Source: Rebecca billardiae RCC1528 (lineage: Eukaryota; Protista; Haptophyta). Taken from it: a stretch of DNA of 64,000 nt. Made by a program: the position numbers and the translations under genes. How positions within the stretch are numbered: the stretch's first letter is position 1; each line of letters opens with the position of its first letter. The notes under the pieces are model-generated. The model had not been told where the DNA came from and did not search any database. It saw nothing but the letters and a program-made list of their open reading frames with translations. The DNA lies in contig OZ251224.1 of the NCBI GenBank assembly GCA_965240325.2, positions 3,720,001-3,784,000 of the forward strand. Direction: 5' to 3'. This document shows, in pieces, positions 30,326 to 57,145 of this stretch.

Positions 30326-30356
<31 letters not shown>

Positions 30357-32551: not shown

Positions 32552-32632
<81 letters not shown>

Positions 32633-34565
32633 CGGTGGCGAGGCGGATGGCGAGGGCGGCGGGGCGTGCGCGCCGCGCGGCGCGCGGGCCTCCGCGCCCA
32701 CCGAGGACGAGCTCCGCGCGCGCTCCCTCGCCCTCGAGCAGCCGCTCGCGCGCGGCGCCACGCGCACCGCCGCAGGCCAGAGGTTCGACTTGGAAGTCGT
32801 GTTGCCCGCGGGCGCGACGCGGTTCGTGCGCGGCCGCAGGCTGACGCTCGAAGGGGTGGACTCGAGCGGGCGGATCGTGAGCTTCGCGCGGCAGCTGCCG
32901 CCGAGCGCGCGCGCGGCGTTCAGGCTGGGCGACCGGCTGGACGTCCGAGCCCTCGAGCCCGAGGCGGCGGCCGAAGGCGAAAGCGGTGGCGGCGGCGATG
33001 GCGGCGGCGATGGCGGCGGCGATGGCGGCGGCGGCAACGGCGGCAACGGCGGCGGCGAGGACGCGCGCGCGCACGCGGCGGCGTCGTCGCCGGGCGTCGG
33101 CGGCGGCGGCGTGGCGCAGCAGCAGCAGCGGCTGCGCGTGCGCGTGCTGCGCGAGCCGCTGCTGCTGCTCTTCGCCACAGCTGCCGAGCGCGACGAGTGG
33201 CGCTCGCGCCTGCTCACCTTGATCGAGGCGGTGCCGGCGCTGGTCGGCGCGGCGGGCGGGCGCGCGCGCGCGGGCTCGGCGGCGTCGGCTGCGCCCGAGC
33301 ACGGCCGTGGCCGCACGCTCTCGCTCGAGTCGAGCCGCTCGTCGCTCGCGGATGGCGGCGGCGGCGGCGGCGGCGGCGCGGCGAACGCGCCGCGCGCGGG
33401 CGCGAACGGGCGCGCCGCCGACGCCGACGCCGCCGACCCGGCCGCGGCCGCGGCCGACGCGGCGGCGGCGCGCGCGCGCGGCGGCGGCGGCGGCGGCGCG
33501 CCGGGCGGCGGCGCGCCGGGGGCGGGCACGATGGGCGAGGGCACGGAGGAGGAGGACGGGGCGAGCTCCGCGGAGGAGGGCCTCAGCGCGTCGGAGCTCG
33601 CCGCCGCGTCGGTGCAGCACTCGCCAGAGCCGATGCGCGCGGGCTGGCTGCTGCTGCGCGGCCAGCGCGCGGCCGGCGGCGCGGCCGGCGGCGCGGCCGG
33701 CGGCGCGGCCGGCGGCGCGGCCGGCGGCGCGGCCGGCGGCGCGGCCGAGGGCTGGCGGCGCGTGTGGGCCGAGCTGGCGCCGAGCGGGCTCGAGCTCGAG
33801 CTGTGGCTCTCGGCGGAGGAGGCGACGGCGGCGGACCGGTGGTGGGACGGCCGCGCGGGCAGCGGAGCAGCGCACGCCGCCGCTTCGCTCCCACTTGAGC
33901 CGCGCGCGCGCTCCGCGTCGGCTGCCGAGCCCGCCGGCGGCGCGCGCCCGCCGCCGCCGCCGCCGCCGCCGCCCGGTGCCGCGGCCAAGCGCCAGCTCTC
34001 GACGGGAGCGCTCGCGGTGTGGGGGCGGCGCTCGAGCGCGGAGCAGGTGGGGTCGGTGGACGGCGCGGCGGCGCGCTCGCCCGCCCTTAGCCCGCCGCCC
34101 GCCGCGCCGCGCGCGCACGCCGCCGCGGCGCCGCAGCCCACTGGGCCGTTAGCAGTGCTGGAGCTGAGGCGATGGCAACACACTGTGACGCACGTGCGCG
34201 CGCCGCGCGGCCCGCCGCGGCCCGCCGCCGCCGAGGGCGGGCCGGCTGTGGAGCGCACGGTGCGCGCGCTGCAATTGTACTGCCCGGCGGAGGGCGAGGT
34301 CGTGCTCCGCGCCGTCGACGACGACGCCGACGACGCCGCCGCGTCGGCGCGGCACCGGCCCGGCGGCGCGGGCGCGGCCGCCGGCGCCGGCATCGACGCG
34401 TGGCTCGGCGCGCTGCGCGACGCGCGCCGCCGCGCCGAAGCGGTTTCGGCCGAGGTCGCCAAGATCACCGAGTTCTCGGGCGCGCGCGCCGCGGGCGGCA
34501 GCGCGCTCGGCGGGCCGCTCGCGCGCTTCGGCTGGCTGCGTGTGCTGCCGGTGCCGGAGGAGGAG

Positions 34566-34597
<32 letters not shown>

Positions 34598-36395
34598 GCC
34601 GCCGCCGCCCGACGCCGCGGCCGCGGCCGCCGCCGCGCTCGGCGGCGGCGCGCGCGGCGCGGCCTCGGCGGAGGCGGCGGCCGCGTGCGCGCCACTCCGT
34701 TGGATTACCCTGTCTGCGGGCGCTGAGCTGCTCGTGCTCGAGTCCCCGCTGGCCACGCGCCCGCTCCTCGCGCTCTCGCTCGCCGAGTGGGAGCCCTCCA
34801 TGGCGGGCGCGCACGGGTTCGACCTCGTCTGCCGCGACGCGCGCAGCCTCGCGCCTCGCCTCGCGCCTCGGCCGGGCTCGGCGCCGGGCAGTGGCGGCGG
34901 CGGCGCGGACGGCGGCGGCGGCGGCGGCGCGCGCGCCGCTGCGGAGCACGCGCTGCGCTTCATCGCCGAGTGTGCGGAGGAGCAGGCGGAGTGGCTCAAG
35001 ACCGTCTCGACGCTGGAGGTGCGGCCCTATCGCACGCAGCCCACAACGGGCGAGCTGCCGCCTCTGACACTCCGCTCGCTCACGCTGCAGCCAGCCGGCG
35101 GCGGCGGCGGGGCCGGTGGTGGTGGTGGCGCGCGCGGCCTCGCGGTGGCGCAGCACGCGGCGCAGCCGCCGCAGCCGCCGCCGCCGCCGCAGCAGCAGCA
35201 GCAGCAGGCCGCGCCCTCGCCCTCGCTGCAGCAGCAGCAGCAGCCGTTCGGCATGACAGTCGGCGAAGTGCTTGGCTTGGCCGTCGTCACCACCGTCGCG
35301 CCCGCCTCCGCCGCGCACGCCAGCGGGCTGCGCGGCGGCGAAGTGATTGTCACGGTGAACGGCCGGTCGTGCGTGTCCGCGGCGCACGCGTTCAACCTGC
35401 TGAGGGAGGCGGCGGCGGCGGGGTCGGCGGTGACGCTGATCCTCTCGGCCGAGCGCGTGTGCGCGCCCACGCCCGCGCCGCGCCCGCCGCGCGGCCCAAG
35501 TCCCGCCGGCGAGCCGTTTGACTCACTCTTCGACACAGCCGAGGGCGGGCGGCCGCTGGACGAGGTGGCCGCGGCGGAGGCGCTGGGCGCGAGCGTGGCG
35601 CGCGTGCGCGCGCTGCGCGCGCACGCGCTGCGGCTCGAGCGGCACTTCCGCGCGTGGCGCGGCGCGGAGGCGGCGCACGCGAGCGCGCTCGCCGCGATCG
35701 GGCCGCCGCCGCTCGACGAGCAAGCTCCGCCGCCCGCCGCCTCGGCCGGCGCCGCGCCGCCGCCGCCGCCCTCGTCGCCGCCGGCCGGCACCGCGACGGT
35801 GGCGGCCGCGGCGCCGCGCGCGCCGACCGACGCCGAGCTGCGCGCCGCGTTCGAGCAGCAGCTGCGCGCGCACCGGCTGCGCGCGGGCGGGCTGGGCACG
35901 CAGGAGCAGGCGCTGCGCGCCGAGGCGGCGCGCGCCGAGCTCGCCCTCACCAAGTGCGAGCGGCGCGGCCGCGACGCGCTCGGCGCTGCGTCGCTGGACC
36001 AGCTGGCCGCGCACGCGCGCGCGCGCTGGCAGGCGGTGGGCCTGGCGAAGCAGCAGCTGCAGCAGGCGAAGATCGACTTCGACCTGGCGGCGCCGCAGCT
36101 GCTCACCTCGCAGCCCGAGCGCCTCTCCGCGCTCGCCGACGGCGTGAGCGACGCACGCCACGGCCTCACGCGCGCGCGCGCCGCCTACGACGACGCCGCG
36201 GCCGCCGTGCACGCCGCGCGCGAGCAGCTGCGCGCAGGGCCGTACGCGCACGCGCTGCGCGAGCTGCTCGACGCGGCGCGCGCGCTCGAGGGCGTGGTGG
36301 CGCGCGCGCGCACGCAGCTCGTCGTGCACGGCGGCGGCGGGCCGCCCGCCGGCGGCGCGGCGGCCGGGGCGGCGGGCCCGGCGGTGCACGTGTAG
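29787..36395 (+). CDS. RhoGEF: WW - DH - PH(s) - PDZ - C-terminal helical/coiled-coil; in-frame intron 31415-31663
   Basis: WW DWTEHTTADG..HNRRTGLSDWERP; DH ELVESERRYV..SIFS..LLVQPIQRVPRYKLML; PH LVLFNDVVL..ERDEW, RAGWL, RFGWL..EEQAEWL; PDZ PFGMTV..VAPASAAHASGLRGGEVIVTVNG. Confidence 0.85.
33668..33747 (+). repeat. 12-bp coding tandem repeat (GCGGCCGGCGGC, ~6 copies; AAGG peptide)
   Basis: Seen directly within the RhoGEF CDS. Confidence 0.9.
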
Positions 36396-36701: not shown

Positions 36702-38092
36702 CAAGGGAGTCAAGGGTGCCCGCGCCCCAGTGGCGCGCTCGGCGGATGTTGGGATACAGATTTTTGCCCGGCGCCCTGCGGCGGCGGCGGCGATGGCGTG
36801 CTCCGCTGGCGGGGCGAGCGCACGGGGCACGGCGCTGCGGGCGCGGATGTGCCCGCGAAGCCGGCGCGTGCGGACGGGCTGTTGCGGGAGAGTATCGGGC
36901 GCCCTCCTGCGACGCGCGACTTGCGCCACGCCTCTTTCGCCTCGGCTCAGAGCAGCGCGCACGCACGCGCCGCCTCAAGGCCAGCCTTGCCGCGCCGCAG
37001 CCGACCGCGCGCGCGCCGTGCGCGGCGTGGTCGGGAAGGAACGGGCGCTGCTGCCGGGCGAGATGGCGACGTCATGGGCGCACGCCATGCCGCCCCGCGG
37101 CGCCGCGAAAGAGCACGAGAACGGATCCGCACAGCTGTTGACGAGTGCTGATTTCTTGCCGTGCCTGAAGCCAGACCTGAGCTCGAAGAAGATGATGAAA
37201 GAGCATCAGCGCGAGGAAAGCGTCGCACCCAGCACTTCTACATGACCACGCGGTGATGAACATTCATGTAAGAGTAGCCCGCGTGCCCGTCTGGCACTGT
37301 TCTGTGTCTCAATGATCGTCCCGACAACGGTCACGACCGCGAGGCAGTGCACACCATTTGTGACAAGTCGAAAAGGCGTGCAAACGGACCGACGACACTC
37401 TCGTCAAGGCGTGGCGGGGCGGCATGGCGTGCGCCTATGACGTCGCCATCTCGCCCGGCAGCAGCGCCCGTTCCTTCCGGACCACGCCGCGCACGGCGCG
37501 CGCGCGGTCGGCTGCGGCGCGGCAAGGCTGGCCTTGAGGCGGCGCGTGCGTGCGCGCTGCTCTGAGCCGAGGCGAAAGAGGCGTGGCGCAAGTCGCGCGG
37601 CGCAGGAGGGCGCCAGATGCTCTCCCGCAACAGCCCGTCCGCACGCGCATTTGTGACAAGTCGAAAAGGCGTGCAAACGGACCGACGACACTCTCGTCAA
37701 GGCGTGGCGGGGCGGCATGGCGTGCGCCTATGACGTCGCCATCTCGCCCGGCAGCAGCGCCCGTTCCTTCCGGACCACGCCGCGCACGGCGCGCGCGCGG
37801 TCGGCTGCGGCGCGGCAAGGCTGGCCTTGAGGCGGCGCGTGCGTGCGCGCTGCTCTGAGCCGAGGCGAAAGAGGCGTGGCGCAAGTCGCGCGGCGCAGGA
37901 GGGCGCCAGATGCTCTCCCGCAACAGCCCGTCCGCACGCGCCGGCTTCGCGGGCACATCCGCGCCCGCAGCGCCGTGCCCCGTGCGCTCGCCCCGCCAGC
38001 GGAGCACGCCATCGCCGCCGCCGCCGCAGGGCCGCGGGCAAAAAGGATCCGCCGAGCGCGCCACTGGGGCGCGGGCACCCTTGACTCCCTTG
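36702..38092. mobile_element. Non-autonomous foldback DNA transposon with ~390-bp TIRs and 7-bp TSD (CAAGGGT)
   Basis: 36702-37098 is the near-exact reverse complement of 37707-38092; termini CAAGGGAGTC...GACTCCCTTG; CAAGGGT at 36695-36701 and 38093-38099. Confidence 0.85.
37355..37940. repeat. 293-bp direct tandem duplication inside the foldback element
   Basis: catttgtgacaagtcgaaaagg... starts at 37355 and 37648. Confidence 0.95.
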
Positions 38093-38169
38093 CAAGGGTG
38101 GTCACTGGTCAACCACTGGTGTGGCGAAGTCGCAGCCGGACCCTTCACTCCCCTGCTGGCCGGACAGCG

Positions 38170-40086
38170 ATGGCGGGCGGCGGCGCCGCACCGGCGGGCG
38201 TGCCGCCGCCTTCTGATCCGGGCGACCTGCGAGCCCTCCTCTCGCCTCTGCGCCCGCGCACGTTCTTCGAGCAGTACTACAACCGCCGCGTGCTGCACCT
38301 CCCCGCCACGAGCGAGCGCGGCTTCCTCGCCGCGCGCGTGTACCCCGGGTCCCCGGCGCGCTCGCTCGAGCCGTGGCTGCGCTCGGTGCACGCGCTGCAC
38401 GCGTGGCAGTCCGGCCGGGTGGAGGGCAAGGAGCGCGGCGAGGACGTGGACGTGCCGGAGAGCTTTGCCGCCTTCCGCGCGCGCCTCCGCCGCGGCTCGT
38501 CGTACGTCGCGCACATCCCGTCCGTGCACGCGCTCCGCGCGGCGAGCGCGCGTGCGCCGGGCAGCGCGCATGCGCGCGCGCTCGCGCGCTTCGCGCCGCT
38601 CGCGCGGCTGCGCCACCGGCTGGAGCGCGTGCTGCGCACGCCGATCAGCGCGAACGTGTACATCTCGGGGCCCTCCGCCGTCGCGCTCGCGCCGCACACC
38701 GACACGACCGACACGGTCGTCCTACAGTTGGACGGCACCAAGGCGTGGGCGCTGTGCGTGCCGCCGCTCTCGGCGCACATGCGCGGCGCGGTGCGCGGCG
38801 CGGGGTGGCGCGAGGCGGGGCTGAGCGACGCGGACGTCGCCGAGCTCAAGGAGACCGAGCTCGCGCGCGCGCACGGCTGCACCGCCCACCCGGACGAGGC
38901 GCTCGCGCCCGGCGGCGGTTACAACTGCCGGACTCTGACCCTCCGGACTTTTGAGCTGCTCTGGGTGCCCAAGGGCGTCGTGCACGCGGCGCGCGAGGCG
39001 GGCGGCGGGCGCAACGTCTCCGTGCACCTCACGCTCGGGCTGCAGCGCGCGGGGCAGCAGTACGCCGACTTTGTGCGCCGCGCGCTCGGCGCGCCCATCG
39101 TGCGCGCGCGCATGCACGAGCTCGGCGCGAGCGCGGACGCGCGCTGGCTGGCGGAGGGCGCGGCGGCGACGGCGCGAGCGCGGCCGGAGGCGGGCGCGGG
39201 GCAGCAGACCGAGCCGGCACCGAGCCGGCCGGACGGGGCGGTCGAGCCGGCGGGGAGCGCCGAGTTCTGGGCCGAGCTGCTCGAGGGCGCGCTCGACGAG
39301 CTCGTGGGGGGCGCCGAGGGTATCGTGTGGCGCCGGCCGTTCCCGTCGTGGGCTCTGGCGTGCGCGGAGGAGGAGGCGGCTGGGGCGGGGGCGGGGGCGG
39401 CTCTCGCGCGCGCCGCGCACGCGGCGCTCGACGCGGGTGCGCTGGACAGCTCGGCGCACAACGCGAGCGCGTGGTCGTACTGCGCGCCGGCGCGCGGCTC
39501 GGGTGCGCACAGCGCTCTGCGCACTCTCTTTGACGAAACACTGCGCCCCCAGCTCGAGGCGCGCGTGCTGCGCGCGGTGGGCCGGAGGGCGCGCGAGGGC
39601 GCGCGCGGGTACGGCCGAGCGCCGCTCGTCCGGGCGATGGCGGCGAGCGTGCTGCGCGCGGCAGGCTCGGCTGCGGCGTTCGAACACGCGGTGCACGCGA
39701 CGATGATCGCCCTCGCCCTCGCCCTCGACGAGGAGAACGGCGCCCTCGGCCCGGCCGGCGGCGTGGACGGCGGCGCGGCGCGCGCCCGCCCCGGCTGGGG
39801 CCAGCTGGGCGGCGCGGCTGCCACGGGCGTGGTCCTTGGCCTCGGCGCGGTGCTCGCGCTGATCGGCGCCCTCGAGGCGCTCCGGCGGCGGCGCGCGCGC
39901 GCGCAGACGGCCGCGGTGCGTCAGCTCCTGCGCGACTTCTACGCGCGCCGTGCCCCGGACCGCCTCGCCGACGCGTGCGCCCTCGAGCGAGCCGTGCGCG
40001 CGGCGAGCGCGGTCGGGCTGCGCGCGACGCGGCGCATGCTCGAGGACAAGTATGGCGCCGCGCCACCGCCGGCGGCGGAGTCGTAG
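38170..40086 (+). CDS. JmjC/cupin 2OG-Fe(II) oxygenase (ROXA/NO66/MINA-like) with C-terminal TM and small helical domain
   Basis: LLSPL..TFFEQYY, ANVYIS..LAPHTDTTDTVVLQLDGTKAW, LLWVPKGVVH..SVHLTLG; TM GVVLGLGAVLALIGAL; LRDFYARRAPDRL..LEDKYG. Confidence 0.85.
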   Translation: MAGGGAAPAGVPPPSDPGDLRALLSPLRPRTFFEQYYNRRVLHLPATSERGFLAARVYPGSPARSLEPWLRSVHALHAWQSGRVEGKERGEDVDVPESFAAFRARLRRGSSYVAHIPSVHALRAASARAPGSAHARALARFAPLARLRHRLERVLRTPISANVYISGPSAVALAPHTDTTDTVVLQLDGTKAWALCVPPLSAHMRGAVRGAGWREAGLSDADVAELKETELARAHGCTAHPDEALAPGGGYNCRTLTLRTFELLWVPKGVVHAAREAGGGRNVSVHLTLGLQRAGQQYADFVRRALGAPIVRARMHELGASADARWLAEGAAATARARPEAGAGQQTEPAPSRPDGAVEPAGSAEFWAELLEGALDELVGGAEGIVWRRPFPSWALACAEEEAAGAGAGAALARAAHAALDAGALDSSAHNASAWSYCAPARGSGAHSALRTLFDETLRPQLEARVLRAVGRRAREGARGYGRAPLVRAMAASVLRAAGSAAAFEHAVHATMIALALALDEENGALGPAGGVDGGAARARPGWGQLGGAAATGVVLGLGAVLALIGALEALRRRRARAQTAAVRQLLRDFYARRAPDRLADACALERAVRAASAVGLRATRRMLEDKYGAAPPPAAES

Positions 40087-40444
40087 GTAGGCTGTGCACG
40101 GCCGGCGCATTGGTGACCCGCGCCACGCGGCCACGGCCCCAAAATCATGATGAGACATGACTGGGCTGGGGAGTGCGAATCCCGTCTCGCGCTCGTCAGT
40201 CACCGTCGTGCCACCCAGCGATGACGAGGCCCACAGCCACGCGCTTGATGACCACGACAATGACGAGCGATGACGAGATTGATTTTGTTTTTAATTGGAA
40301 GCTAGCTAGAATTCGTTTTTCATCATCCCGACGCACGCGTGCGTGCGTGACGATGGAAAACAAATAAAGGAAAAAGGGCGAGTCGTAAGTCGTTAGGCGA
40401 ACGGACGATGGCCGCGCGTTGAGGACCTGCGGAGTGTGGGCGCC

Positions 40445-41978
40445 ATGAACGACCGCCGGCGTGCCGAGCGCACGGGGCCCATCCGCTTCCGCACGACCTT
40501 TCGGAACGTGGTCCTCGACGTCCTCCGCGCGCGTAACTGGCGCGAGACCGAGTCGGACACCGACTGGGATGTCGCCTGGATCGACACGGGCTGGATCCGC
40601 GAGTTCTTTGACGGGATGCACCTCGAGGACCACCAGGTGATCAACCACTTCCGCAACCACTACGAGCTCACGCGGAAGGACCTGCTGATCAAGAACCTCA
40701 AGCGCATGCAGCGCGCGCTCGTGCGCGAGGGCCTGGCCGCCGAGGCCGCGCGGTACGACTTCTTCCCGCAGACGTACGTGCTGCCCGCAGACTATGGGCT
40801 GTTCGTCGAGGAGTTCAAGCAGCACCCGGGCGCGTTCTGGATCATGAAGCCGATCGGCAAGGCGCAGGGCAAGGGGATCTTCCTCTTCAACAAGCTCAGC
40901 CAGATCAGCGACTGGAAGAAGGACTCGCGCTGGAAGCCTAACCTCGACGGGCAGCAGGTGCGGCGCGCGCATTCGACTGAGCGGCGGCGCGCGGCGTACG
41001 CGGGCCGACTCCCGCGCCGGGCCGCTCACCGCGCGCGCGCCGCCCGCGTGCGCGCCGCCCTCGCGCAGCCGCAGGCGCCGCAGGCGGAGACGTACGTCGT
41101 GCAGAAGTACCTCGAGAACCCGCTCCTCATCGGCGGCAAGAAGTTCGACCTGCGCATCTACGCTCTCGTCACCTCCTACTCGCCGCTCACGGTGTGCGCG
41201 CGCGCGCGCCGCGCCGCGCCGAGGCCAGGCGCGCGCGAAGGCCGAGCGCGAGGGGGCGCGCGCCCCGCGCCGCCCGGCCCCGCGCTCGCTCATCCGCGCA
41301 CGCGCGGCGGCGTGGCCGTCGTGCCGCCGACGACCGGCGCAGGTGTACCTGTACAGGTCAGGCTTTGCGCGGTTCTCGAGCTCGCGCTACCAGATCACAA
41401 AGTCGACGCTCGGCGACAACTTTGTCCACCTCACCAACGCGGCGATCCAGAAGACGGCGGCGGGGTACGACAAGGAGGTCGGATGCAAGTGGCCGCTGCG
41501 CAACCTCAAGCTGCACCTGATCAGCCAGTTCGGCGCCGACGCGATCGACGAGCTGTTCTTCTCGATCCAGCAGATCGTGACGCACTCGCTGCTCGCCGTG
41601 CAGAAGGTGATCATCAACGACAAGCACTGCTTCGAGCTGTACGGGTACGACATCATGATCGACGACAACCTCAAGCCGTGGCTCATCGAGGTGAACGCGT
41701 CGCCGTCCATCACCGCCGACTCGCAGGCGGACTACGACCTCAAGTACGGCGTGCTCGACGACATCTACACCATCCTCGACCCGGAGGGCCTGCTGGACGA
41801 CGAGCTGTACGAGCAGGTGGGCGGCTTCGACCTCATCTATCACAACGGGCCGGTGAGCAAGCTCGACAGACACAACCAGCAATACACGAGCATGCTTGGC
41901 TGCTTCGACGACCGTGCGCGCAATCTGAAGAAGCTCTTCAAGCAACACAGCAAAGCGCGGGCTGGTGTGTCCTCATAG
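40445..41978 (+). CDS. TTLL9: Tubulin polyglutamylase, TTLL9-like; introns ~40958-41068, 41192-41342
   Basis: INHFRNHYELTRKDLL, WIMKPIGKAQGKGIFL, KFDLRIY, HLTNAAIQK, CFELYGYDIMID..PWLIEVNASPS, QVGGFDL. Confidence 0.9.
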
Positions 41979-43176
41979 GTCATATAGGTCATAGGTCGCA
42001 GGCGGGCCAGACGGGTCTGCGACGGCGGACAGGCTGAATGCTCACAGCTTAGCAGCCGATCGAGTGATGCGCAGCCGCGTGTGAAACTTCCTCAAGCAGT
42101 CACTCTCGCGTTACTCGTGTGCGAGTCGTGATGATGATCGTCCGACTCTCCGCGAGGCAGGCACTGAGTACAGATGTTACAGTCGTCGTAGTCTACACTG
42201 CTCTACAGAGTAACAGCTTCAGAGAGTAGCAGCCATAAGTAGCAGGCAGTGCGGGCCATAACTGCTATACGGCATACTGCTATAAGTTACTGTCATCAGT
42301 CAGTGGCTGAATAATTTCTATAGTTACTCAGTACCGTGTTACTGACGACACAGATGTCTGTGAGATGACAGAGACAGAGTGAGAGTGACTGACAGGCAAG
42401 GCAGTAAGTGCGTACCGTGTCCGTGACAGTGACTGGCAAGGGCCGTACGTACGGTACTAGGCCGGGAAGGTCGGCGGGCGCTTCCCCCCGTGCGGTTACG
42501 AGCGACGCACCGAGAAACGTCCGCGCAGTCGGCAGTCTGAGGGCTGGGGCGGCTGGAATTTACAGGTAACACGTGCATATGTGTGGGCCCGCCACCTGAT
42601 TAGATCGAGACCCTGAATTTGATGGGCTTCTCTGTACCCAAGCTACCCTTGATGAGCATACGCGGTCTCCAGCCCTCCGGAGCCAATCGACATAAATCCA
42701 TCACAAATAGCATGCTTTCTGAATCGTGAGCATCAGTCCTCTCATCAGTGCCATTGCAACAAGCTAAAGATGCGCCAAGGTTCACACAGATTCACAGGGA
42801 TTCTCGCTCCAAACGACCTCTCGCGCGTTCATGAGAATCAGTAGCTACTGTCTGCGGGCCTGAATAGAGTTTTAGGTCTGATGATTGGTCTGCAGGCGTG
42901 CGCGCGCGCGCTTAAGCCGCACTCGCTGAATTCACTATCTATAACTCTACAGTACTAATAATTTACCCTTAGTTCATAATAACGGGCTCTACTGCGCTCA
43001 TCAGATTCATCCAGGCGGAAGGTACCGTACTTGTAGATTGCGCGCCCGACGGGTGCGGACGAGCGGTAAGACTTTGTGGTCTCGCACCGTGCTCGGTCGG
43101 CGACCTGTACCTTCTGCGGGCGTCGTGCCGCCCACACCCCTGCCCAGCAAGGAATCGGAGAACTGCCCCGGGCGCA

Positions 43177-46100
43177 ATGCTCGGCAGTGGTGTCTCGCCG
43201 CGCAGAGCCGGAGCGCCGGCCGACGGCGGCGCGGACGAAGCAGGCCGCGCATCCATCGCGCCCAGCCGGAAGGGCCTGGCTGGGCGGGCTGAGCGACTTG
43301 TCGACAGCGGGCGGGCCATCACGACGAGGCTCGCGGAGAGCGCGGCTGCAGCGCGCGAATCGAAGCACCAGGTCGAGCTGCGTGGCCCGCAGCCCGCGAA
43401 GGTCAAGGGCATCCTCAAGTCCGGCCACGACCGCAGAAGGAAGGACGAACGCGTCAAGTGGCGCACCGTGCTCGCGGGCGAGGAGGCCAACGTGCAGGAC
43501 GACCGCATCAAGCAGGCTCAGGACGTGGAGGAGCGCGAGCGGCGGGCGAGGCTGCTCAACATTGCCAAGCTCGCGCGGCTGCCCACGCTGACGATCGAGG
43601 AGCTGATGATTCCGCTGCGCCTCGCGTTCCCCGAGCTTATCGTGAACAGCCCCGTCGCGATGATCCTCGACATCATCAGCGACTCGTTCGAGCTCTGCTG
43701 GATTGTCAAGACGATCCGCGAGCAGCCGACGCTGGAGGAGGTGCGCAAGATGGATGAGGAGCAGAGCGGGAGCAAGGCGGGCGACGAGCAGTCAAAGATC
43801 GAGCTTTACACCGCCGCGCACGCCGTGCGCGACATTGGCACGGTCCTCTCGCTGCACTTCTCGCGCGGCATCTACATCATCTCGGGCGACGACACGCTGT
43901 GGACGCTCGTGCAGGTGGTGCGCACGGTGCGCGTGCGCGAGCTCGTGGGGTACGTGCAGCAGATCAACAACGACCTGACCACGAACGTCAAGTTCCTCGC
44001 CGTGTACAAGTTCTCGCTCGTGCTCATCTCCGTGCCGCACTGGGTGCGCGCGCGCGCGGCCTGCGCGCGCGCGGCCTGCGACGCGGCACCGCGGCACCGC
44101 CCCGGCACCGCGGCGCGCGACACCCAGCGACCTCTCTGACCGAGCCCTGCCCCGCGCGCGTGGCTGTGCGCGTGCGCCTCGCAGGTGGCGTGCATCTGGT
44201 GGGCCCTCGCCGCGCGCTGGGGCCGCGAGGTGCTCGCGCTGCCGTCATGGCCCGCGCAGGTCCCGCTGCTCACGAGCAACCGGGACCTCAACGCCGCTCA
44301 GATGAGCGACGTCGACAACTACATCATGTCGCTGTACATGGCGTGGATGGGCCTCACGTCGATGGGCTACGGTGCGCGCGGCAGCGATCCGGTCCCCACG
44401 CGTGCGCGCTGCTGCTCGCCGCGCCGCGGCCGCGTGCTCACGTGCGCGCCGCCTCGCGCCCGGCATCGCGCGGCCGTGCACGCGCCCGCCTCCAGGCACG
44501 CTCGTGCTGACGATCCAGCAGGAGGTGATCTTCGCGGCGTTCGTGGCGATGCTGCAGATGGTCTTCTACGCGTTCGTGCTCGGTACCCTCTTCCACTACC
44601 TCGTGCGCACCGACGAGAACACCGTGCACTACAACGAGCTGATGAAGGCGGTGGACGAGTACGTGAGCCACCGCAAGTTGCCCAAGGAGCTCGCCGCCAA
44701 GATCCGCGCGCACTACGCCTTCCAGCACCGCAAGCAGGCGGCGGGCACGGAGCGCATCTTCGGGCAGATGCCGCTGTCGATGCGCACCGAGGTCGCCGTC
44801 TCGCAGCACAGCCGCCAGATGCACGCCACGTGGGTGTTCTGGGCGTGCACGCCGCAGTTCCTCAGCTACGTCGCGCTCTACCTGCGCGAGCGCTTCATGA
44901 TGGTGCGTGCCGCGCGCGCCGCGCGCGCCGTGCGGCTTGCTTCAAGGCGCACCGCGGCCGCGGCTGGCGCGCGCGCGGCGTGCTCACCACACCGCCCCAC
45001 ATCATCGCGCGCGCGCGCCGCCTCGCGACTGCGCAGCCAAGCGAGACCCTCTTCAAGCGCGGCGACGGCGCGGCCGAGCTCCTCTGGTGCGTCGGCGGCT
45101 CGCTGCACGTCGGCAAGGGCGATCAGCACATCACGACGATCCGCTCCGACCTCGGGCCGGGCCAGATCGTGGGCGAGGTCGCGTTCTTCATCGGCATCCA
45201 GCAGCAGTACTCGGTCGTCGCCTCCTCCAAGGGCGAGGTGACGCTGATCGTGCTCACGAGCTCCGCCTTCGAAGAGATCATCGCTTCACACCCCGAGCAG
45301 ACAGACCAGATCACGCAGAACCTGCTGCGCAAGTACGGCCTCGACAAGAACGGCGCCGACCTCACCTCGGGCGGGTTCAACGAGCAGATGGACGAGGACG
45401 AGCAGCGCGAGTACGAGGCGCTTCGCTCGACCATCCGCGCCGCCATCCTCGAGCGCAACGAGGAGCTTTTCGCGCAGATGTCGACGGCGGTGCACTACGG
45501 CGACGTCGAGACGGTGCGCGCGCTCACGGCGCGCGGCTTCGACCTGGGCGCGGGCTCGTACGACATGCGCACGCCGCTCCACCTCGCCTCGATGGAGGGC
45601 CACCGCACGGTCGTGAAGGTGCTGTGCGAGCTCGGCGCCGAGGTGAACACGGTCGACCGCTTCGGCTCGACGCCCATCAAGAACGCGGTCGAGGGGAAGC
45701 ACGGCGCGGTCGCGGACGAGCTGTCGCGCTTCGGCGCGCGGCTCTCGCTGGTCCACCCGGCAGCGAGGCTGCACGCCGCGGCTAAGGCAGGCGACATGCA
45801 CACGATGACGATGCTCGTCGCGCACGGCGTCGACATCAACTCGGTCAACTACGACGGGCGCACCGCGCTGCATGTGTCCTCCTCGGAGGGCAACGCGCGC
45901 GTCTCCGAGTACCTCATCTCCAACATGGCCGACGTGCACGCACGCGACCGCTGGGAGCACTCGCCGCTCGACGACGCGATCGACAATGACAACCCGCTCG
46001 TCGCGCAGATGCTGGTGCGCTCGTCGGCGATGCCGGACATCAAGACGCTGGCCGAGCTGCTGCGAGCATCGGCCGCTGCCGGCGACGCCAATCGCCTCAA

Positions 46101-49100
46101 GTTCCTCCTGTCGTTGGGCGTCGACATCGACGCGGCCGACTACGACGATCGGACTGCGCTGCACTACGCGGTGCGCTCGGGCTCGGTCTCGTCGACGCAC
46201 TCACTCGTGTGCGCGCTCGCGGACGTCAACCTGACTGACCGCTGGCTGCGCCCGCCGCTGCTCGACGCGCTCGAGGTGAGCCCGAGGCTCGCGTCCGTGC
46301 TGCTCCAGGCGGGCGCGCGCGTGCCGGACAGCCACAAGGACGACCCGGAGATCACGGCCAAGGTGCGCGCGGCCGAGGCGTCGGACCTGTACGACGTGAA
46401 CCGCGCGATCAGCGACATGTCCAAGCAGCGCGAGAAGCTGAACGGCGAGCAGCGGAACAAGTCGCGCGAGGTCGAGGTCGCCATCACGGGGCTGGCGGAG
46501 GAGCTGAGCGCGCTCATGCGCGCGCAGCGCGGCCTCTTCCGCCAGGTCTCCAAGCACGCCGACATCTGGATCGCCGAGTACGGCGAGGAGGGCGACTCGG
46601 ACACCGACTCCGACATGGACCCCGAGGACGTGAACCACGACGATGTGGACGACGGCGACGACGAGGAGCACGCTTCGTTCTCGCATGGCGCACGCGCGAC
46701 GTCGAAGCAGTTCATCAAGCTCGTGCTGCAGCTGCCGAAGGCGGAGGCCGGGCTCATCGAGCTGCGCGATCTCTTCTCCAAGCGGATGTCGCCCGACGCG
46801 TTCAAGGGGCTGTCGCCATCGGAGCGCAGCCTCCTCGAGGATTCGGAGCTGTACAGCATGCTCAAAGAGGAGCTCGACATCCAGCCCGATGAGGCAGATC
46901 GCATCGTCGACGACATCTACGCCGAGCTCAAGGCGTACCTTGGCGACGTCGCGCCCGCGCCGCCCGAGCGGCTGCGCACCGACGCTGTCCACAAGATGAA
47001 CGGCTTCCAGCCAGTCGAGGAGGCAGACGAGCGCAGCCCTGCCGAGGCCGAGGGCGCCGCCGTGCCGGGCATCGCGATCGTCGGCGCGACGCCCGACACG
47101 AGCGCTCGCCACGGTGGGGGCTCGGACCGCGTGCGCGCCATGATCCGCCGGGGCTCAGGCACCGGCGCGACGCTGCTCGACCTCTCCAAGCACCTCAACG
47201 ACCAGCAGAGCAGGAGCAGCCCGCCATCGCGCCGCCGCGCGGGCGCTCGACCGTCTCTTCGTGCGCTGGGGCGCAATGCCGCGCCGACGAGCTCCGAAGC
47301 GGCCGACATCGACCCCGTCTTTCTCTCGGACCTTGGCCACGTCGTCCTCTTCTGCTCGCAGCGCTTCATCACAGTGCTGAACGAGCGGTTCGAGTCGACC
47401 GTCCAGCCGGTGCCAGGCACGCCGCACCTGGGCAAGGAGGCGGACGGGGCGCGTGCGGGCACCGACGAGCAGGACAGCCCGGCAGACTGGCTCGGGTCCA
47501 GCCGCAGCCCTTCCAACCGCAACAGGCTCTCGCGGGGCATGCAGCAGGGCATGCAGAACATCATGCGCCTCAGCACGAGCAACGTGGAGTCGCGCGGGTC
47601 GGCGCAGGATGGCGCGCCCGAGGCGCAGCCCGCCACGCCGTACGCCGACGTGGGCCGTGCCTCGTCTGTGATCATGAGCCTCTTCAAGGTCTTCGACACG
47701 GAGCGCCGCGGCAGCATTCGCCTGCGCGACGTGAAGCGGCTGCAGGGCGAGCTGGGCGAGATGGGCTCGCACGAGATCAAGTCGCTGCTGGCGTACCTGA
47801 TGGGCGCGTCGAGCACGCTGCGCGTGACGGCTGAGAGCGAGGAGGACGACGGCACGCCGACCCCGTTCGGCGGCCGCCGCGCCGGAGCGGCGCCCAACGC
47901 CGCGCTCGCGGCGCCCGACGCCGCGCTCGACGCCGAGCTGCGCCGGCGCACGGCCTCTCCGACGCGCCGCTCGCAGCGCATCTCCCTGAGCCTGCACCGT
48001 GGTGGCGACGCGGATGCGAGTGCGAGCGCTGAGTCGAAGGCGGCTAATGTCGCACCGTCGGGCGAGGTGAGCAAGCTCTTGCAGGCGGCGCCCGCTGGCG
48101 AGGACGAGACGGTCACACAGACGTGCAGCAGCAACTCCTCCAGCTCCTCCTCCGATGGGAACGCGCCGTCGAAGCCCGAGCCGGCCGCCGCCGCCGGCGC
48201 CGGAGGTGCCCCCGCGCCAGGCACGAACGGCGGCGCCGCCGCCGCAGCGGGGCTCGGCACGGAGGCGGGTGGCGACGCCGACGCGCAGTCGCGCATGGCG
48301 CGCGAGCGCAAGCCGCAGTCCATGTCGGCCGCGCAGTTCTTCGTCGGCGTCTCCTCCTGGATCCTACTCTCGGTCGCGGACGAGCTGCCGGATGCGGAGG
48401 CCGCCCGCGACGGCGCGCTCGTGCCAAAGCTCGGCAGGCACGAGCAGGACACGGGCGCCAACTCGTTTGTGGCTAAGGCAGCGCTCGCGTCGAACGCCAA
48501 GGCGGCGAAGGCGGAGGCGGCGGCGAAAGAGGCGCGCGAGAAGGCGATCGCGCGCGAGCTCGACGCCGCGCTCAGCTCGGTCGCGGCGTGCGTGCTGCTC
48601 GCGGACAACCTGCAGCAGCGGATCGACACCGGCCGCATCGGCGCGAACGACGCGGCCGAGCCCGCTGTGCTGCTCAAGGCAGTGCTCCACTCCGTGGTCA
48701 TCCCAGAGGGCACGTCCGAGCGCCACCTCGCCGAGTGGGCGGAAGCCCATCTCGAGATCACGTTTGCGAGCGCGTCCGACGCGATCCGTCCGGTCGAGGA
48801 CGATCCGGCGAGCGCGCGCGCCGAGCGGGACAGCGGCGCCGAGCGGCAGCACGCGGAGCAGCACAAGCCGGTGCTCGCCGAGGCTGACGCTGGCGAGGAG
48901 CTGCCCGCCTCGTGGAAGGAGCTGACGAACAAGCTGCGCGAGCGCGGGACGGTGCTGCGCGACGAGGCGGGCGAGACCCTCAACACGCAGGCGGGCAAGA
49001 AGGGCCCGATCACAGCCGTCCTCGAGGCCTTCGGCGTCGGCTCGGCGGCGGTCGTGCCGGTGAGCGACGACAAGTATGGCGACACGGCGAACGAGGGCGG

Positions 49101-52100
49101 CGGCGGCGCGGGCGTCTGGCCGTGGTACATCATGAGCGTGCGCTCGCGGTGGTACTCGTACGTGCACACGCTCTTCCTCGTGCTGGTGGTGTGGGACGCG
49201 CTCTTCGTGCCGATGCAGCTCGCCTACTTTGACGAGGTCGTGCGCATGCCGTGGGTGCTCGGCCTCAACCTCGCATTCGACGTGCTGTACGCGATGCGGA
49301 TCGCCTCGCTCTTCTTCACGACCTACATCAACGAGAAGTCGGTCGAGGTGTTTCGCCCGCGCGAGATTCGGCGGCAGTACCTCGCGGGCGACGCCGGGCT
49401 CGACCTCTTCGCGTGCTGGCCGCACGACCAGGTGCTCTGGGCGCTCGGCGTGCCGACGATGATCCGCTTCGGGCTGCGGCTGCTGCGGCTGATCAACTGC
49501 CGGTACGCGTTTGCGTCGTTTGGCCGCTGGAAGGCCAAGCTGAGCGACTCCGACTTCAGCTCGGGGCTGATCAAGAACCTGACGCCGCTCTTCATCACGA
49601 TCCACTACATGGCGTGCGTGTGGAACGTCCTCGGCTTCTCCGCGGTGGGGCACACCTTCGGCATCCGCACGTGGGCGGACGTGTACCTGCACTCGCAGGA
49701 AGAGGTGGGCTACTCTATGACGATCTACGACTCGTACGAGGAGAAGCTGGTCGACCACTACCTCACGTCGGTCTTCTTCGTGCTCTCGCTGATCTCGGCG
49801 CTGGGCGTGGCGCAGCTGCCGGCCAACATGATCGAGTTCTTCGCCTTCGTCGTGCTTGCGATCCTCAACATGACGATCTACGCGTACTGCGTCGGCGGGA
49901 TCTCCGGCCTCGTGATGAAGCAGGACGACGAGATCGTCGGCAAGCGCGCGCACCTTGAGCTCGTGCACGCGTACGTGCGGCACGTGCACGTGCCGCCCGA
50001 GCTGAAGGACCGCATGACCAAGTTCTTCGTGCAGCGGCTGCAGCACACCTCGCTCTCATCCGTCGACTCGGAGCAGATCTACTCGGGGCTGCCGATGCCG
50101 CTGCAGATGGAGGTGGCGGCGCACACGAACCGCGCGCTCGTGGGCAACTGCGCGCTGCTGCGCGGCTGCTCGACCGGCTTCCTCGACCGGCTCTCCTCGT
50201 CGCTGCGCGAGCGCGAGCTCGAGGCGGAGACGGTGGTCTTCCGCTCGGGCGAGGCGTGCAAGGAGCTGCTGCTGCTCGCGTCCGGCACCATCGAGACGAT
50301 GGAGGAGGGCGAGGGCGCGGACGACTCGGTGGAGACGCTCGGCCCGGGCGACACGGTCGCCGAGGTCGCCTTCGTCTTCCGCATCCGCCACTTCAAGACC
50401 GCGCGCGTCGGGCGGAACGAGAAGGCCTTCGCGTTCACGCTCGCGCTGGAAGCGTGCGCGCCACGCTCGTGCCCCGTGCGGCTGCGCGAGGCAGCGGCTG
50501 TCTTGCGCTCACTCACACGCACACCGCCGCGCGCGCGCCCCTCGCTCACGCGCCGCAGGTACAAGGAGCTGCTCAAGGCCTTCCCCTCGCAGGAGGACAT
50601 CGTCATGGACAACGTGGTCCGGCAGTACGAGGGTGCGTGCGGCGGCCGTGCTCCTGCGGCGCATCGGCTGCGCGCGCACCGCACCGCACCGCACCGCGCC
50701 GCACCGCGCCGCACCGCGCCGCACCGCGCCGCGCCGCGCCGCACCGCACCGCACCGCCGTCGTGTGCGCAGCCGCTGAGCCCTCCACTCCCTCGCCCATC
50801 GGACGCGTGCGTGCGCGTGCGTGCGCGTGCGTGCGCGTGTCCGCAGGCATGACCACCTCGCGCTCGGCGAGGTCCAAGGCGTCGAGCGGCGCGTCGTCGT
50901 CGCCGTCGTCGCACGTGTCGGACAACGTCTCGGTCGGTGGCCGGTCGGACAGGTCCAACGTCCAAGATGTTCAGACGCTGCACAACGTACGCGCGCCGGC
51001 GTGCTCGCCTCGCGTGCACGCGCGCCCGCGCGCGCTCTCCGGCGCGGGGGCGCGCGCGCGGGCGCCGGCCCGTCGCTCCCATCGCGCGCAGCACTGACGC
51101 CGCCCGCGCGGCGCCTGGGGCTCGCGCGCAGACGCTCGCCGAGGCCAAGCGCAAGCGCGAGGAGCTGATGCACGCGCGGCTGTGCATGGCGTGCGCCAAG
51201 GGCGACTACGACAAGGTGCGCCGCATGCTGACGGGCCGCTCGATCGACATCGACCACGGCGACTTTCAGGGGCGGCGCGCGCTGCACCTCGCGGCGTGCG
51301 GCGGCGACAAGCGCGTGATCGAGTTGCTGCTCGCGTCCCGCGCGGACGTGAACATCGAGGACAGCCTGGGCAACACGCCGCTCGACGACGCGCTCCACTC
51401 GGACAACGCCGACGCCGCGGCGCAGCTCGCAAGCCACGGCGGGCTGCACGGCTCGCGCGACGTCGCCGACGAGGTGTGCACGGCGGGCAGCCACGCCGAG
51501 GGCAAGCAGGAGCTGCAGCGGCTCTGCCAGTACGGCGGCAACGTGAACGCGGCCACGCACGAGCAGCGCACGGCGCTGCACATCGCCGCGTCCGAGGGCC
51601 GCGTGGACAACCTCCGGATGCTGCTCGAGAACAAGGCGGACGTGAACGCGCGCGACCGGCGCGGCTCGACACCGCTGCAGGACGCGCTGCTCGGCCGTCA
51701 GGACGAGGCGTGCGAGCTGCTGCTGCAGCACGGCGCGATGCTCGGCGAGTTCGACACGGCGCTGCACATGAACACGGCGGCCGCGCAGAACGACACGCTG
51801 CACCTCGCGCGGCTCGTCAAGTTCCGCTGCTCGATCAACACGCAGGACGAGCTCGGCCGCGCGCCGGTCCACCTCGCCGCGTCCAGGCGCCGGCTCAACG
51901 CGCTCAACTTTCTGCTCGACACGGCCGACATCGACGTCAACATCGAGGACAAGTTCGGGAACACGGCGTACGACGACGTGCTGCGCGACCCCGAGACCGA
52001 GGGCAAGGTACTGCGCGCGCTGCTCGAGACGCGCGGCGCCAAGCGCGGCGGCCACGTCAGCCACGCCGACATCCACGTGCAGCGAGACCTGGAGGCCGAG

Positions 52101-52722
52101 AGCGCGCGCGTGCTCACCGTGGTGCTGGGCGAGCGCGACCGCGTGCTCGAGGAGGCCCAGCTGCTGCGCGAGTGGGTGCGCGAGGAGCGCAGCGCGCTGC
52201 AGACGTTCAAGGGTCAGCTCGAGGTCGCCCTCGCGCTGCAGCGCGAGCGCGGCGCCGTGCTCGCCGACGAGCTGCCCGAGCTGTGGGAGCAGGTGTACGC
52301 GTACGCGGAGGGCTACTTTGACTGGCGCGAGGAGGCGCGCAACTCTGCGGCTGCCACGATCGAGCAGTGGTCGGAGGACAACAAGGACTTTGCGCTCATC
52401 GCGATGCAGAAGCTGCAGTCAAAGGTGCGCCCATCGCATCTGCGGCGCCCCGCGAGCGCGGCCGGTTGCCTGGCGATGTGCACGTGTGGCGCCCTGGCCG
52501 GCACTCGATCACCGGCGTGCCTCCGCCAAAGCTGTGCGCGCGCCACCTGTGGCGCATGCCGTGCGCGCCCTTCATGCCGCTCATTCATCTCCCGCGTGTC
52601 GTCCGTGTCGTGCGTGCGTGCAGTTCAAGGACATCATGGCGCTCGCTGAGACGGATTCCAAGGGCATCGAGAGGTTGTACGAGGTCACGTTCCGCAAGCC
52701 TATGAAAGTGGACGCCAGCTGA
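43177..52722 (+). CDS. Two-repeat cation channel [6TM-pore-C-linker-CNBD-ankyrins-coiled coil] x2 with central EF-hand-like motif, ~2,800 aa; introns 44044-44184, 44372-44495, 44903-45036, 50454-50558, 50633-50846, 50987-51131, 52425-52623
   Basis: Repeat 1 filter LTSMGYG|T, CNBD GPGQIVGEVAF, ankyrins RTPLHLA/RTALHV; FKVFDTERRGSI; repeat 2 S4 LRLLRLI, IHYMACVW, pore LISALGVAQLP, CNBD GPGDTVAEVAF, ankyrins RRALHLAA/RTALHIAA. Repeat-1 CNBD through repeat-2 CNBD lie in one exon. Confidence 0.88.
50677..50757. repeat. (CGCAC/CGCGC)n pentamer microsatellite in channel intron
   Basis: Seen directly. Confidence 0.9.
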
Positions 52723-55900: not shown

Positions 55901-57145
55901 ATGGCAGCAGCCAGCACCGACCGACTTGGCGATCGTCCAGGCGCGACGGTCGATCAGTCAGGGGCGCAAGAACGAAAGCGCGGCTATTGGGCAACTGCGG
56001 AATACCACGCTGATGCAATATCTTTCCTGGAGGCAGCCAACTCGGCCGAGTATGGGGCAACCGGCGTCGCCAAGTCGCGCAAGCAGATGAGTGCGCTCAC
56101 AGAAGCAGCAGGCGCCCTGCAGGCTGCGAGCATCGCCATGGCAAAGGGCCATTCAGACGGCATCCTCTCTCGTAAAGATGATCCTGTCTTCTTCCTGCCA
56201 ACCGACCCGCGCAACGTCTGGGCGCTCGATGCGCGACTACACGCAGAGCGCCGAATGATCCAACTTCCGCTCGCAGGCTTGGAGCTGAGCCTCAAGCAGG
56301 TGCACTGGTCCGTGGTGAGCACGGCGGAGGACGGCGACGCGTCATTGGAGGGTCATCTCACCGGTGGCATCTGCTGGGACGGCGCTGTGGTGCTCGCGGA
56401 CTTCCTCTGCCACCCGCCGGCTGTGCTTGCTGCCCACCACCCGGGCCTGGCGCGACGGGGCGCCGGCGCGGGCTGCGCCTGGAGCTGGGCGGGCAAGACG
56501 GTGGTTGAGCTGGGCTGCGGCTCGGCCGCGCTGCCGTCGATTGCTGCTGCGTTGCAGGGAGCCTCCGTAGTGCTGGCCACTGACGGCTCCAAAGCGTGCG
56601 TCGAGCTGGCGCGCTCGAACGTCGCGGAGATCGGCCGCCAACATGCACCTGCCCGCAAGGTGAGTGTGTCGCAGCTGGTGTGGGGCCAAGGTGACGAGAC
56701 GCGCCTCCTGGCCGAGCACGGCGTCTTGGCTGCCGAACCAGAGGTGAGCAATCGGCTGACTGCTGACGTGATCCTCTGCGCGGACGTGTTGTACGTGCTC
56801 GCCAACCCCGGATGCTGGGGGGCGCTTCTGCGCACCATGCGCAGCCTGAGCGGGCCTGAGACGATTGTGCTCCTCACGTACACCGAGCGCGGCCACGCCA
56901 AGGGCTTCAAAAAGTTTCTCCGGCGCGCCGGCGAGGCGGGGCTTGCCGCAATCGAGGTGGCACCGCACCTTCTGCATCCAGTACACGCCGTTGGCTGCTC
57001 TCAACGGCTCGAACAGCACGTGGGCAACGTCCAGCTTTTCTGTCTCTCAGCGCTACAGACTACGACTGGCGGCCACTGCTCATCAGACTCAGTCTCAGCA
57101 GATCACCAGATGACCAGTGCGTCCGCCAGTGTGACCAGTGAATAG
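55901..57145 (+). CDS. METTL21/EFM-type (family 16) protein-lysine methyltransferase
   Basis: TGGICWDGAVVLADFL, VVELGCGS, VLATDG, LVWG, DVILCADVLY. The 5' end may include upstream exons from ~55278. Confidence 0.85.
   Translation: MAAASTDRLGDRPGATVDQSGAQERKRGYWATAEYHADAISFLEAANSAEYGATGVAKSRKQMSALTEAAGALQAASIAMAKGHSDGILSRKDDPVFFLPTDPRNVWALDARLHAERRMIQLPLAGLELSLKQVHWSVVSTAEDGDASLEGHLTGGICWDGAVVLADFLCHPPAVLAAHHPGLARRGAGAGCAWSWAGKTVVELGCGSAALPSIAAALQGASVVLATDGSKACVELARSNVAEIGRQHAPARKVSVSQLVWGQGDETRLLAEHGVLAAEPEVSNRLTADVILCADVLYVLANPGCWGALLRTMRSLSGPETIVLLTYTERGHAKGFKKFLRRAGEAGLAAIEVAPHLLHPVHAVGCSQRLEQHVGNVQLFCLSALQTTTGGHCSSDSVSADHQMTSASASVTSE

Follow-up and report, generated by a model that had tools for sequence, protein, structure and literature searches.

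Channels in which two six-transmembrane (6TM) units, each followed by a cyclic nucleotide-binding domain (CNBD), are joined in a single chain were first reported as two-repeat tandems from dinoflagellates and oomycetes, on the basis of sequences only (Pozdnyakov et al. 2020; PMC7576140). The selectivity filters described there are mostly of the TVGY/FG type, with deviations that are rare and not clade-wide, and the paper lists no haptophyte tandem and has 0 occurrences of ankyrin (PMC7576140). In this study, we analyzed a stretch of 64,000 nucleotides from the haptophyte Rebecca billardiae RCC1528 (contig OZ251224.1, positions 3,720,001 to 3,784,000 of the forward strand; below called the window, with positions counted from its first letter). 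It carries one gene on the + strand (43177-52722) that encodes, in this order, a 6TM-CNBD-ankyrin unit (repeat 1), a conserved cytosolic linker of about 900 residues and a second 6TM-CNBD-ankyrin unit (repeat 2). Like the tandems of 2020, it is known from sequence, has two 6TM-CNBD units per chain, and belongs to a family whose first and second repeats fall into separate clades with parallel branching, implying co-evolution and specialization of the halves; it differs by a second filter that is degenerate throughout the haptophyte family and by its ankyrin blocks (PMC7576140). The architecture class has been known since 2020 and the ankyrin-bearing haptophyte branch is an addition to it, so that the novelty which a first-pass annotation of this DNA had seen in the doubled architecture is narrowed to the ankyrin repeats and to the haptophytes. 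In the literature searched, nothing beyond PMC7576140 was found that joins the term two-repeat tandem with CNBD, and nothing that combines haptophyte, potassium channel, ankyrin and cyclic nucleotide.

Among channels of solved structure, the plant Shakers AKT1, GORK and SKOR are the best matches of repeat 2 by sequence and by fold. They also share the order of 6TM core, C-linker, cyclic nucleotide-binding homology domain (CNBHD) without the Arg of the phosphate-binding cassette, and ankyrin repeats. However, their subunits are single units that tetramerize and provide TxGYGD in all four strands, whereas two units are present per chain here, and the sequence identity is only about 20%. The C-terminal domain of plant Shakers is the Pfam domain KHA; a domain of this type was not detected in the C-terminal parts scanned, in which Pfam gave only ankyrin. 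The designation plant-Shaker-like, which had been given to the gene, is apt as far as ankyrin repeats follow each CNBD, but it expresses resemblance and not membership, as the nearest relatives are haptophyte proteins, the units are two, TxGYGD is lacking, and no KHA was detected in the parts scanned.

TPC1 has two non-identical 6TM units per chain and forms a dimeric pseudo-tetramer with two different filters, and plant TPC1 has EF-hands in its linker. The tandem described here shares the two non-identical 6TM units and an inter-repeat linker with an EF-hand, which is degenerate in this case. TPCs are devoid of CNBD and ankyrin, and no TPC was among the listed PDB matches by sequence or fold, every one of which was a CNBD channel. 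The sperm channel CNGK, with four repeats, K+-type filters, functional CNBDs and no ankyrin, is likewise a covalently concatenated CNBD channel, but it contrasts with the two ankyrin-bearing repeats found here.

The nuclear gene consists of eight exons (E1-E8) and seven GT-AG introns and encodes about 2,827 residues (Table 1). Exons were placed by tblastn with relatives (P0001, P0002 and P0014) and by reading the DNA at each junction, and searches were run per exon or with natural relatives as queries. The introns are short (105-214 nt) and have a GC content of 0.72-0.86, above that of the exons, in a window of about 70% GC; six of the seven donors read GTGCG, the donor of E6 reads GTACGC, and the acceptors read (C)GCAG. 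Because several introns are free of in-frame stops, the raw open reading frame (ORF) passes through them and extends over 2,197 codons (44185-50778, + strand), while E4-E6 together give 1,877 codons without a stop. The single exon in which the first-pass annotation had placed the junction of the two repeats (45037-50453) proved to have exactly these boundaries by splice-site reading, although more exons lie 3' of 50453 than had been implied. The start of E5 is supported by an alignment of relatives with a gap across the intron 50454-50558, and E7 is 50-52% identical to P0013 and P0014 and 59% identical to Diacronema genomic DNA. Pfam found two cNMP_binding stretches, ankyrin and Ion_trans in the translation of exon 4 (45037-50454), and the second ankyrin block in that of 51141-52430.

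The linker that joins the repeats shows all signs of coding sequence. Exon 4 was divided into 300-nt blocks; all of them, also those of the linker, have a GC content of 0.87-1.00 at third (GC3) and 0.33-0.69 at second codon positions (GC2), while the GC content of the seven introns is flat, unlike that of the periodic exon 4. Since the GC3 periodicity of the linker is that of the rest of the exon, the linker is read in this frame. Also, exon 4 is 47% identical over 100% of its length to the Diacronema lutheri protein KFE25_007711 (P0001), and five linker islands (46477-46600, 46717-46840, 47677-47800, 48277-48400 and 48517-48640) are kept in P0001 and in the more distant P0002 with identities of 40-65%. 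Codon periodicity and conservation led us to reject a chance open frame. P0002 is an unbroken ORF of 2,899 residues with the same layout and was found on three independent contigs (one from Logan, two from ENA metagenomes); as it is free of introns, the layout is not an artefact of the splicing model. P0014 (2,704 residues, L005) is a single ORF that fills its 8,395-nt contig except for short untranslated ends and is colinear across every intron of the window gene. P0037 (2,647 residues) occurs both as an MMETSP transcript ORF labelled 'complete' and on the JGI contig L007, and hence the JGI contigs of the series Ga0186xxx are transcript assemblies of the MMETSP type.

Two separate genes or transcripts, with a promoter inside the linker yielding a separate repeat 2 subunit and an open frame that is fortuitous or serves for occasional read-through, are highly improbable. 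Such an arrangement would agree with the MMETSP ORF P0013, which starts within the linker (aligned from 47140), with the long chance ORFs that high-GC DNA gives in other frames, and with transcript continuity being seen in relatives only. However, the JGI contig L008, which belongs to the same 90% cluster as P0013, reaches further upstream, across the post-ankyrin region and, past one frameshift, into ankyrin block 1, so P0013 is 5'-truncated, and this transcript-type contig holds ankyrin block 1, linker and repeat 2 together. The in-frame periodicity and conserved islands of the linker, the full-length tandem transcript-type contigs L005 and L007, and the one ORF of P0002 in three assemblies equally speak against two transcripts. 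The frameshift in L008 (764-776) lies between ankyrin block 1 and the post-ankyrin region of the P0013/P0060 organism and reflects an assembly error or else a true disruption in that strain. Nothing was found in favour of a chimeric assembly or of an artefact from recent tandem duplication at the junction, and the chance of this is next to negligible: identity between the two repeats is only about 22%, and at least five independent assemblies or transcripts share the junction, as does the genomic DNA of Diacronema. Coding linker, conserved junction and uninterrupted P0002 ORF confirm that the covalent tandem in one predicted polypeptide is genuine, as had been claimed, and this polypeptide is a two-repeat tandem.

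The two selectivity filters differ. In repeat 1, the final Gly arises from a split codon, with G at 44371 and GC at 44496-97; as this codon encodes Gly, the GYG signature holds after splicing, and repeat 1 reads SMGYGT. GYG is likewise found in repeat 1 of P0014, L006 and P0022. The canonical filter is T-T-V-G-Y-G-D (Shaker numbering), and compared with it repeat 2 has Ala for Thr, Val for Tyr, Ala for the second Gly and Gln for Asp. Most repeat 2 units of the family share the consensus LG[VIL][AN]Q[LV]P. In an alignment of 15 sequences, conservation of the Gly in the repeat 2 P-loop is 90% or more, and the Pro and Glu that follow closely behind it do not vary. Across pore helix, filter and S6, repeat 2 has an identity of 0.60-0.80 to the orthologue, similar to that of repeat 1. 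By these comparisons, the repeat 2 filter is a conserved non-K+ motif across the family, and not a product of decay. The asymmetry noticed at first reading, with TSMGYG in repeat 1 and SALGVAQ without GYG in repeat 2, is thus real by the DNA and maintained across relatives.

The proteins nearest to the predicted product are all haptophyte or of MMETSP type, and the comparison shows the gene to be the orthologue of D. lutheri KFE25_007711. An affinity to green algae was rejected, as the nearest proteins come from Diacronema and from MMETSP-type contigs; the Chlamydomonas matches P0004 and P0042 have one channel unit only. Diacronema has the paralogues KFE25_007711, KFE25_008060 and KFE25_003141 as well as partial models. 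The NCBI model of KFE25_007711 omits, in repeat 1, the last part of S5 and the turret, and further the whole second ankyrin block. The omitted parts are present in frame in the genomic DNA (L004, JAGTXO010000003.1, 6868-7053 and 13949-15247) with 58-59% identity to the window, and therefore the true Diacronema protein also has the full 2x(6TM-CNBD-ankyrin) layout. Exons 1-3 of the window gene form one continuous exon in Diacronema.

Trees were computed as quick IQ-TREE runs of 42-44 units with support by the Shimodaira-Hasegawa-like approximate likelihood ratio test (SH-aLRT), and long branches were present. Repeat 1 units group together with SH-aLRT values of 95-98 and repeat 2 units with values of 98-99, and the branching inside the two clades runs in parallel; Diacronema 8060 takes the basal place in each, and repeat 2 of the window is sister to that of KFE25_007711 (88-90). 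The placement of the second repeat of P0003 (P0003_r2) shifted between tree runs. These trees show that the two repeat clades of a multi-paralogue family evolve in parallel, and hence that the duplication predates the radiation of the paralogues. In the same quick, long-branched trees, the family is set apart from Pythium, Symbiodinium, three- and four-repeat units, and animal KCNH/HCN with SH-aLRT values of 92-94; with this moderate support, its origin may be independent of that of the known tandem CNBD channels. Other concatenations were met in the jackhmmer profile searches. P0041 and P0043 have three or four consecutive 6TM-CNBD units and cluster away from this family, P0046 has two, and P0045 ([Pythium] brassicae, 2,754 residues) has four, which could represent two fused tandem genes. 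Higher-order concatenation of CNBD channels seems common outside animals, judging from these sequences.

One relative carries additional sensor domains. In P0019, a JGI transcript-type contig of 8,490 nt that belongs to the repeat 2 clade, a LOV-RGS-LOV arrangement occurs twice directly upstream of a repeat-2-type unit with the filter LGLAQLP, a CNBD and ankyrin repeats. Its four LOV domains have the flavin-Cys motif G[QR]NCRFLQG (at aa 28, 341, 611 and 924), making P0019 a candidate light-regulated channel relative. The ORF opens partway through a LOV domain, and residues ~4-500 are repeated exactly at ~587-1085; the contig may therefore be truncated or mis-assembled. A Pfam scan of the linker of the window gene gave no LOV or RGS domains.

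Both units have the features of the CNBD-channel superfamily, namely a 6TM core, a basic S4, a P-loop, a C-linker and a CNBD fold. In a PDB search with phmmer, repeat 2 (49042-50454) matched GORK with an E-value of 1.5e-26 and also hERG, SKOR, AKT1, HCN and CNG channels. An AlphaFold2 (AF2) model of 47641-50453 reached predicted local distance difference test (pLDDT) values of 80-92 over the channel part, and the top Foldseek matches of repeat 2 in this model were GORK, AKT1, HCN1 and SKOR (E-values of about 1e-18 to 1e-19). Repeat 1 has the S4 sequence VVRTVRVRE (exon 1), and repeat 1 of the orthologue matched LliK, SthK, SKOR and GORK in the PDB with E-values of about 1e-20, over the part that starts with S4. 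In the iterated jackhmmer search, the match of repeat 1 of P0014 to the 6TM-CNBD profile extends over positions 13-445, which means that S1-S3 are present, and that of repeat 2 of P0014 over positions 2-446.

The phosphate-binding Arg is missing from both CNBDs, as had been noted at the outset, and is replaced by Gln in CNBD1 (compared with MloK1) and by His in CNBD2 (compared with PKG). We gave this loss no special weight, because CNBHDs of plant Shakers and KCNH channels are normally without this Arg. The linker was reported to contain an EF-hand-like motif, and a canonical EF-hand was taken to have a 12-residue loop, in which positions 1, 3, 5 and 12 provide oxygen ligands and the last of these is Glu, and a Pfam match above threshold. 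EF-hand families (EF-hand_6, EF-hand_7) are indeed the best Pfam match in six of six orthologues tested, which points to derivation from an EF-hand, but all matches are sub-threshold (EF-hand_6 with 18.5 bits, cut-off 25). In close relatives, position 3 of the loop is A, S, T or R and position 5 is R, A, N or K; neither position is retained as a ligand in any close relative compared. AF2 predicts helix-strand-helix for the region (pLDDT 60-77). In the distant relative P0003, the loop just upstream of the second 6TM unit is canonical (D-A-D-D-D-G-V-L-S-R-A-E) and scores above the Pfam thresholds. From this pattern, we read the linker motif as a fossil EF-hand kept for structure. Regulation by Ca2+ through this loop, as suggested previously, is unlikely because no close relative compared retains ligands at positions 3 and 5, and because the loop itself has Arg at 5 and Asp at 12. 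Around the conserved hydrophobic helix further downstream, AF2 gives a strand and a helix (model residues 227-248) and the Kyte-Doolittle (KD) hydropathy reaches a borderline maximum of 1.56; we take this helix as the probable exit helix belonging to a second EF-like hand.

We consider it likely that the whole is best explained by one tandem gene whose product forms a dimer with an alternating pore, weakly selective and gated by voltage and by partners. By analogy to TPCs and other two-repeat channels, two chains would probably dimerize into a pseudo-tetramer, in which the P-loops of repeats 1 and 2 would line the central pore alternately. The four voltage-sensor-like domains would be in a non-swapped arrangement, and the four CNBHD-ankyrin modules would form a ring in the cytosol. 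Only two of the four strands would offer a complete stack of GYG carbonyls, and repeat 2 has Ala or Asn in place of the second Gly. This would distort the outer K+ sites, and instead of strict K+ selectivity a weakly selective cation pore of the HCN or NaK kind would be expected. Voltage, together with protein partners or phosphorylation acting on ankyrin repeats and linker, would be a likelier means of gating than cyclic nucleotides, which are disfavoured because both cassette Arg residues are missing, or Ca2+, which is disfavoured because the EF loop is without ligands.

Several points weigh against this explanation. The dimer with alternating filters is a reasonable model, but its stoichiometry, conduction and selectivity are predictions. 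Repeat 1 reads GYA in P0002 and in the Diacronema orthologue, where it was read from continuous genomic sequence, which shows that even the K+-type filter is not strictly constrained among the sequences compared. The hydropathy profile has no peak at the unusually polar S1 of repeat 1. Modelling a proxy for repeat 1 (P0014:60-600, 9 rows) with AF2 gave a poor model, with a mean pLDDT of 52, that was used for the order of secondary structure only. Three borderline-hydrophobic stretches of the linker (KD 1.5-1.6) leave a small doubt about topology. Finally, the mRNA spanning both repeats is deduced for this gene from transcript contigs of relatives only.

The degenerate filter could also mean that repeat 2 stands outside the conducting pore, with four chains whose repeat 1 units form a K+ pore next to a separate (twin) or non-conducting repeat 2 module, or with repeat 2 as a pseudo-channel that regulates by sensing voltage or a ligand. 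We regard this as unlikely. The absence of Thr, Tyr and the second Gly from the repeat 2 filter would fit, and so would the modular use of a repeat-2-type unit behind LOV-RGS-LOV in P0019, although the start of P0019 within a LOV domain may indicate a 5'-truncated tandem transcript. However, repeat 2 conserves its pore helix, its S6 and the P-loop residues Gly, Pro and Glu as well as repeat 1 does, which is expected of a working pore strand, and the known two-repeat channels such as TPC form dimers.

The alternating dimer, which we prefer, can be extended by a bolder and tentative proposal that we hold to be possible but doubtful: the second P-loop, conserved without GYG throughout the clade, would make an obligate two-fold non-K+ pore (e.g. 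weakly selective or permeable to Na+/Ca2+), the family would represent a living intermediate of independent origin on the path of voltage-gated-like channels from one to two to four domains, here within the CNBD superfamily, and the linker would be a slot for sensors. As such a plug-in slot, the linker may hold a canonical EF-hand in P0003, a fossil EF-hand in the window gene and LOV-RGS in P0019.

Table 1. Features of the tandem channel gene in the window, with positions, strand and content or basis of assignment.
Feature	Position	Strand	Content or basis
Exon E1	43177-44043	+	N-terminal tail, repeat 1 S1 to first part of S5; tblastn and alignment; donor CACTGG/GTGCGC
Exon E2	44185-44371	+	End of S5, turret, pore helix and filter of repeat 1; acceptor CGCAG/GTG, donor TACG/GTGCGC
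Exon E3	44496-44902	+	Repeat 1 S6 and C-linker; identity 84% to Diacronema, 72% to P0014
Exon E4	45037-50453	+	1,805 codons and 2 bases: CNBD1, ankyrin block 1, entire linker, repeat 2 6TM, C-linker, most of CNBD2
Exon E5	50559-50632	+	C-terminal helix of CNBD2, YKELLKAFPSQEDIVMDN; acceptor CGCAG/G, donor GAGG/GTGCGT
Exon E6	50847-50986	+	Ser/Thr-rich spacer, MTTSRSARSKASS; matches TSRSGKSKSS segment of P0001, P0002, P0013 and P0014; splice phases fit
Exon E7	51132-52424	+	Ankyrin block 2 and C-terminal coiled-coil-like conserved domain
Exon E8	52624-52722	+	Conserved C-terminal tail and TGA stop; 62-64% identical to Diacronema C-terminus
Introns	44044-44184, 44372-44495, 44903-45036, 50454-50558, 50633-50846, 50987-51131, 52425-52623	+	DNA read
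Repeat 1 filter T-S-M-G-Y	44356-44370	+	DNA read, exon 2
CNBD1 phosphate-binding cassette GEVAFFIGIQQQ	45172-45207	+	Canonical Arg replaced by Gln; alignment to MloK1, other CNBDs, and LliK via orthologue
Ankyrin block 1	45454-46326	+	Pfam Ank_2, Ank_4, Ank, E 1e-26 to 1e-30
Pseudo EF-hand (helix-loop-helix)	47641-47814	+	Best-conserved linker island, 65% identity to P0001 and to P0002
EF-like loop DTERRGSIRLRD	47695-47730	+	D-T-E-R-R-G-S-I-R-L-R-D; Arg at ligand position 5, Asp at 12
Conserved hydrophobic helix SMSAAQFFVGVSSWILLS	48319-48378	+	Conserved in 10 relatives; not predicted as membrane helix
Helical pre-S1 cytosolic domain of repeat 2	48470-48760 (approximate)	+	Island 48517-48640; AF2 helices at model residues 278-371, pLDDT 80-90
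Repeat 2 S1-S6	49120-49920	+	Pfam Ion_trans; PDB phmmer; Foldseek
Repeat 2 S4 IRFGLRLLRLINCRY	49462-49506	+	Within S1-S6
Repeat 2 filter S-A-L-G-V-A-Q	49795-49815	+	Aligns to GORK T-V-G-Y-G-D
CNBD2 phosphate-binding cassette AEVAFVFRIRHF	50359-50394	+	His in canonical Arg column, Arg one residue earlier; alignments to PKG and GORK
Ankyrin block 2	~51190-52130	+	Pfam ankyrin 3e-32

The neighbours of the gene in the window, all on the + strand, encode JmjC (37843-40083), tubulin-tyrosine-ligase (TTL, 40436-42034) and Methyltransf_16 (lysine-methyltransferase) domains (55901-57142). Farther upstream, an open frame of 2,202 codons with about 82% GC (29787-36392, + strand) contains RhoGEF and PDZ domains and is apparently a very large signalling gene of extreme GC richness. 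Synteny with the Diacronema locus was not found, as the neighbours there differ (K_trans, Ubie methyltransferase, filamin/GEX2).

Concatenation fixes the order and stoichiometry of subunits, and concatenated channels thus show how pseudo-symmetric pores such as those of TPC, NaV and CaV channels could arise from homotetramers. The family provides a natural case among CNBD/Shaker-like channels in which one strand keeps the K+ signature while the other has settled on a different conserved motif, and it could be used to ask how many GYG strands K+ selectivity needs. The gene described here may serve as the plain reference member for its sensor-bearing (LOV-RGS) relatives. For the haptophytes, major marine primary producers with poorly understood membrane excitability, the family adds predicted cation channels.

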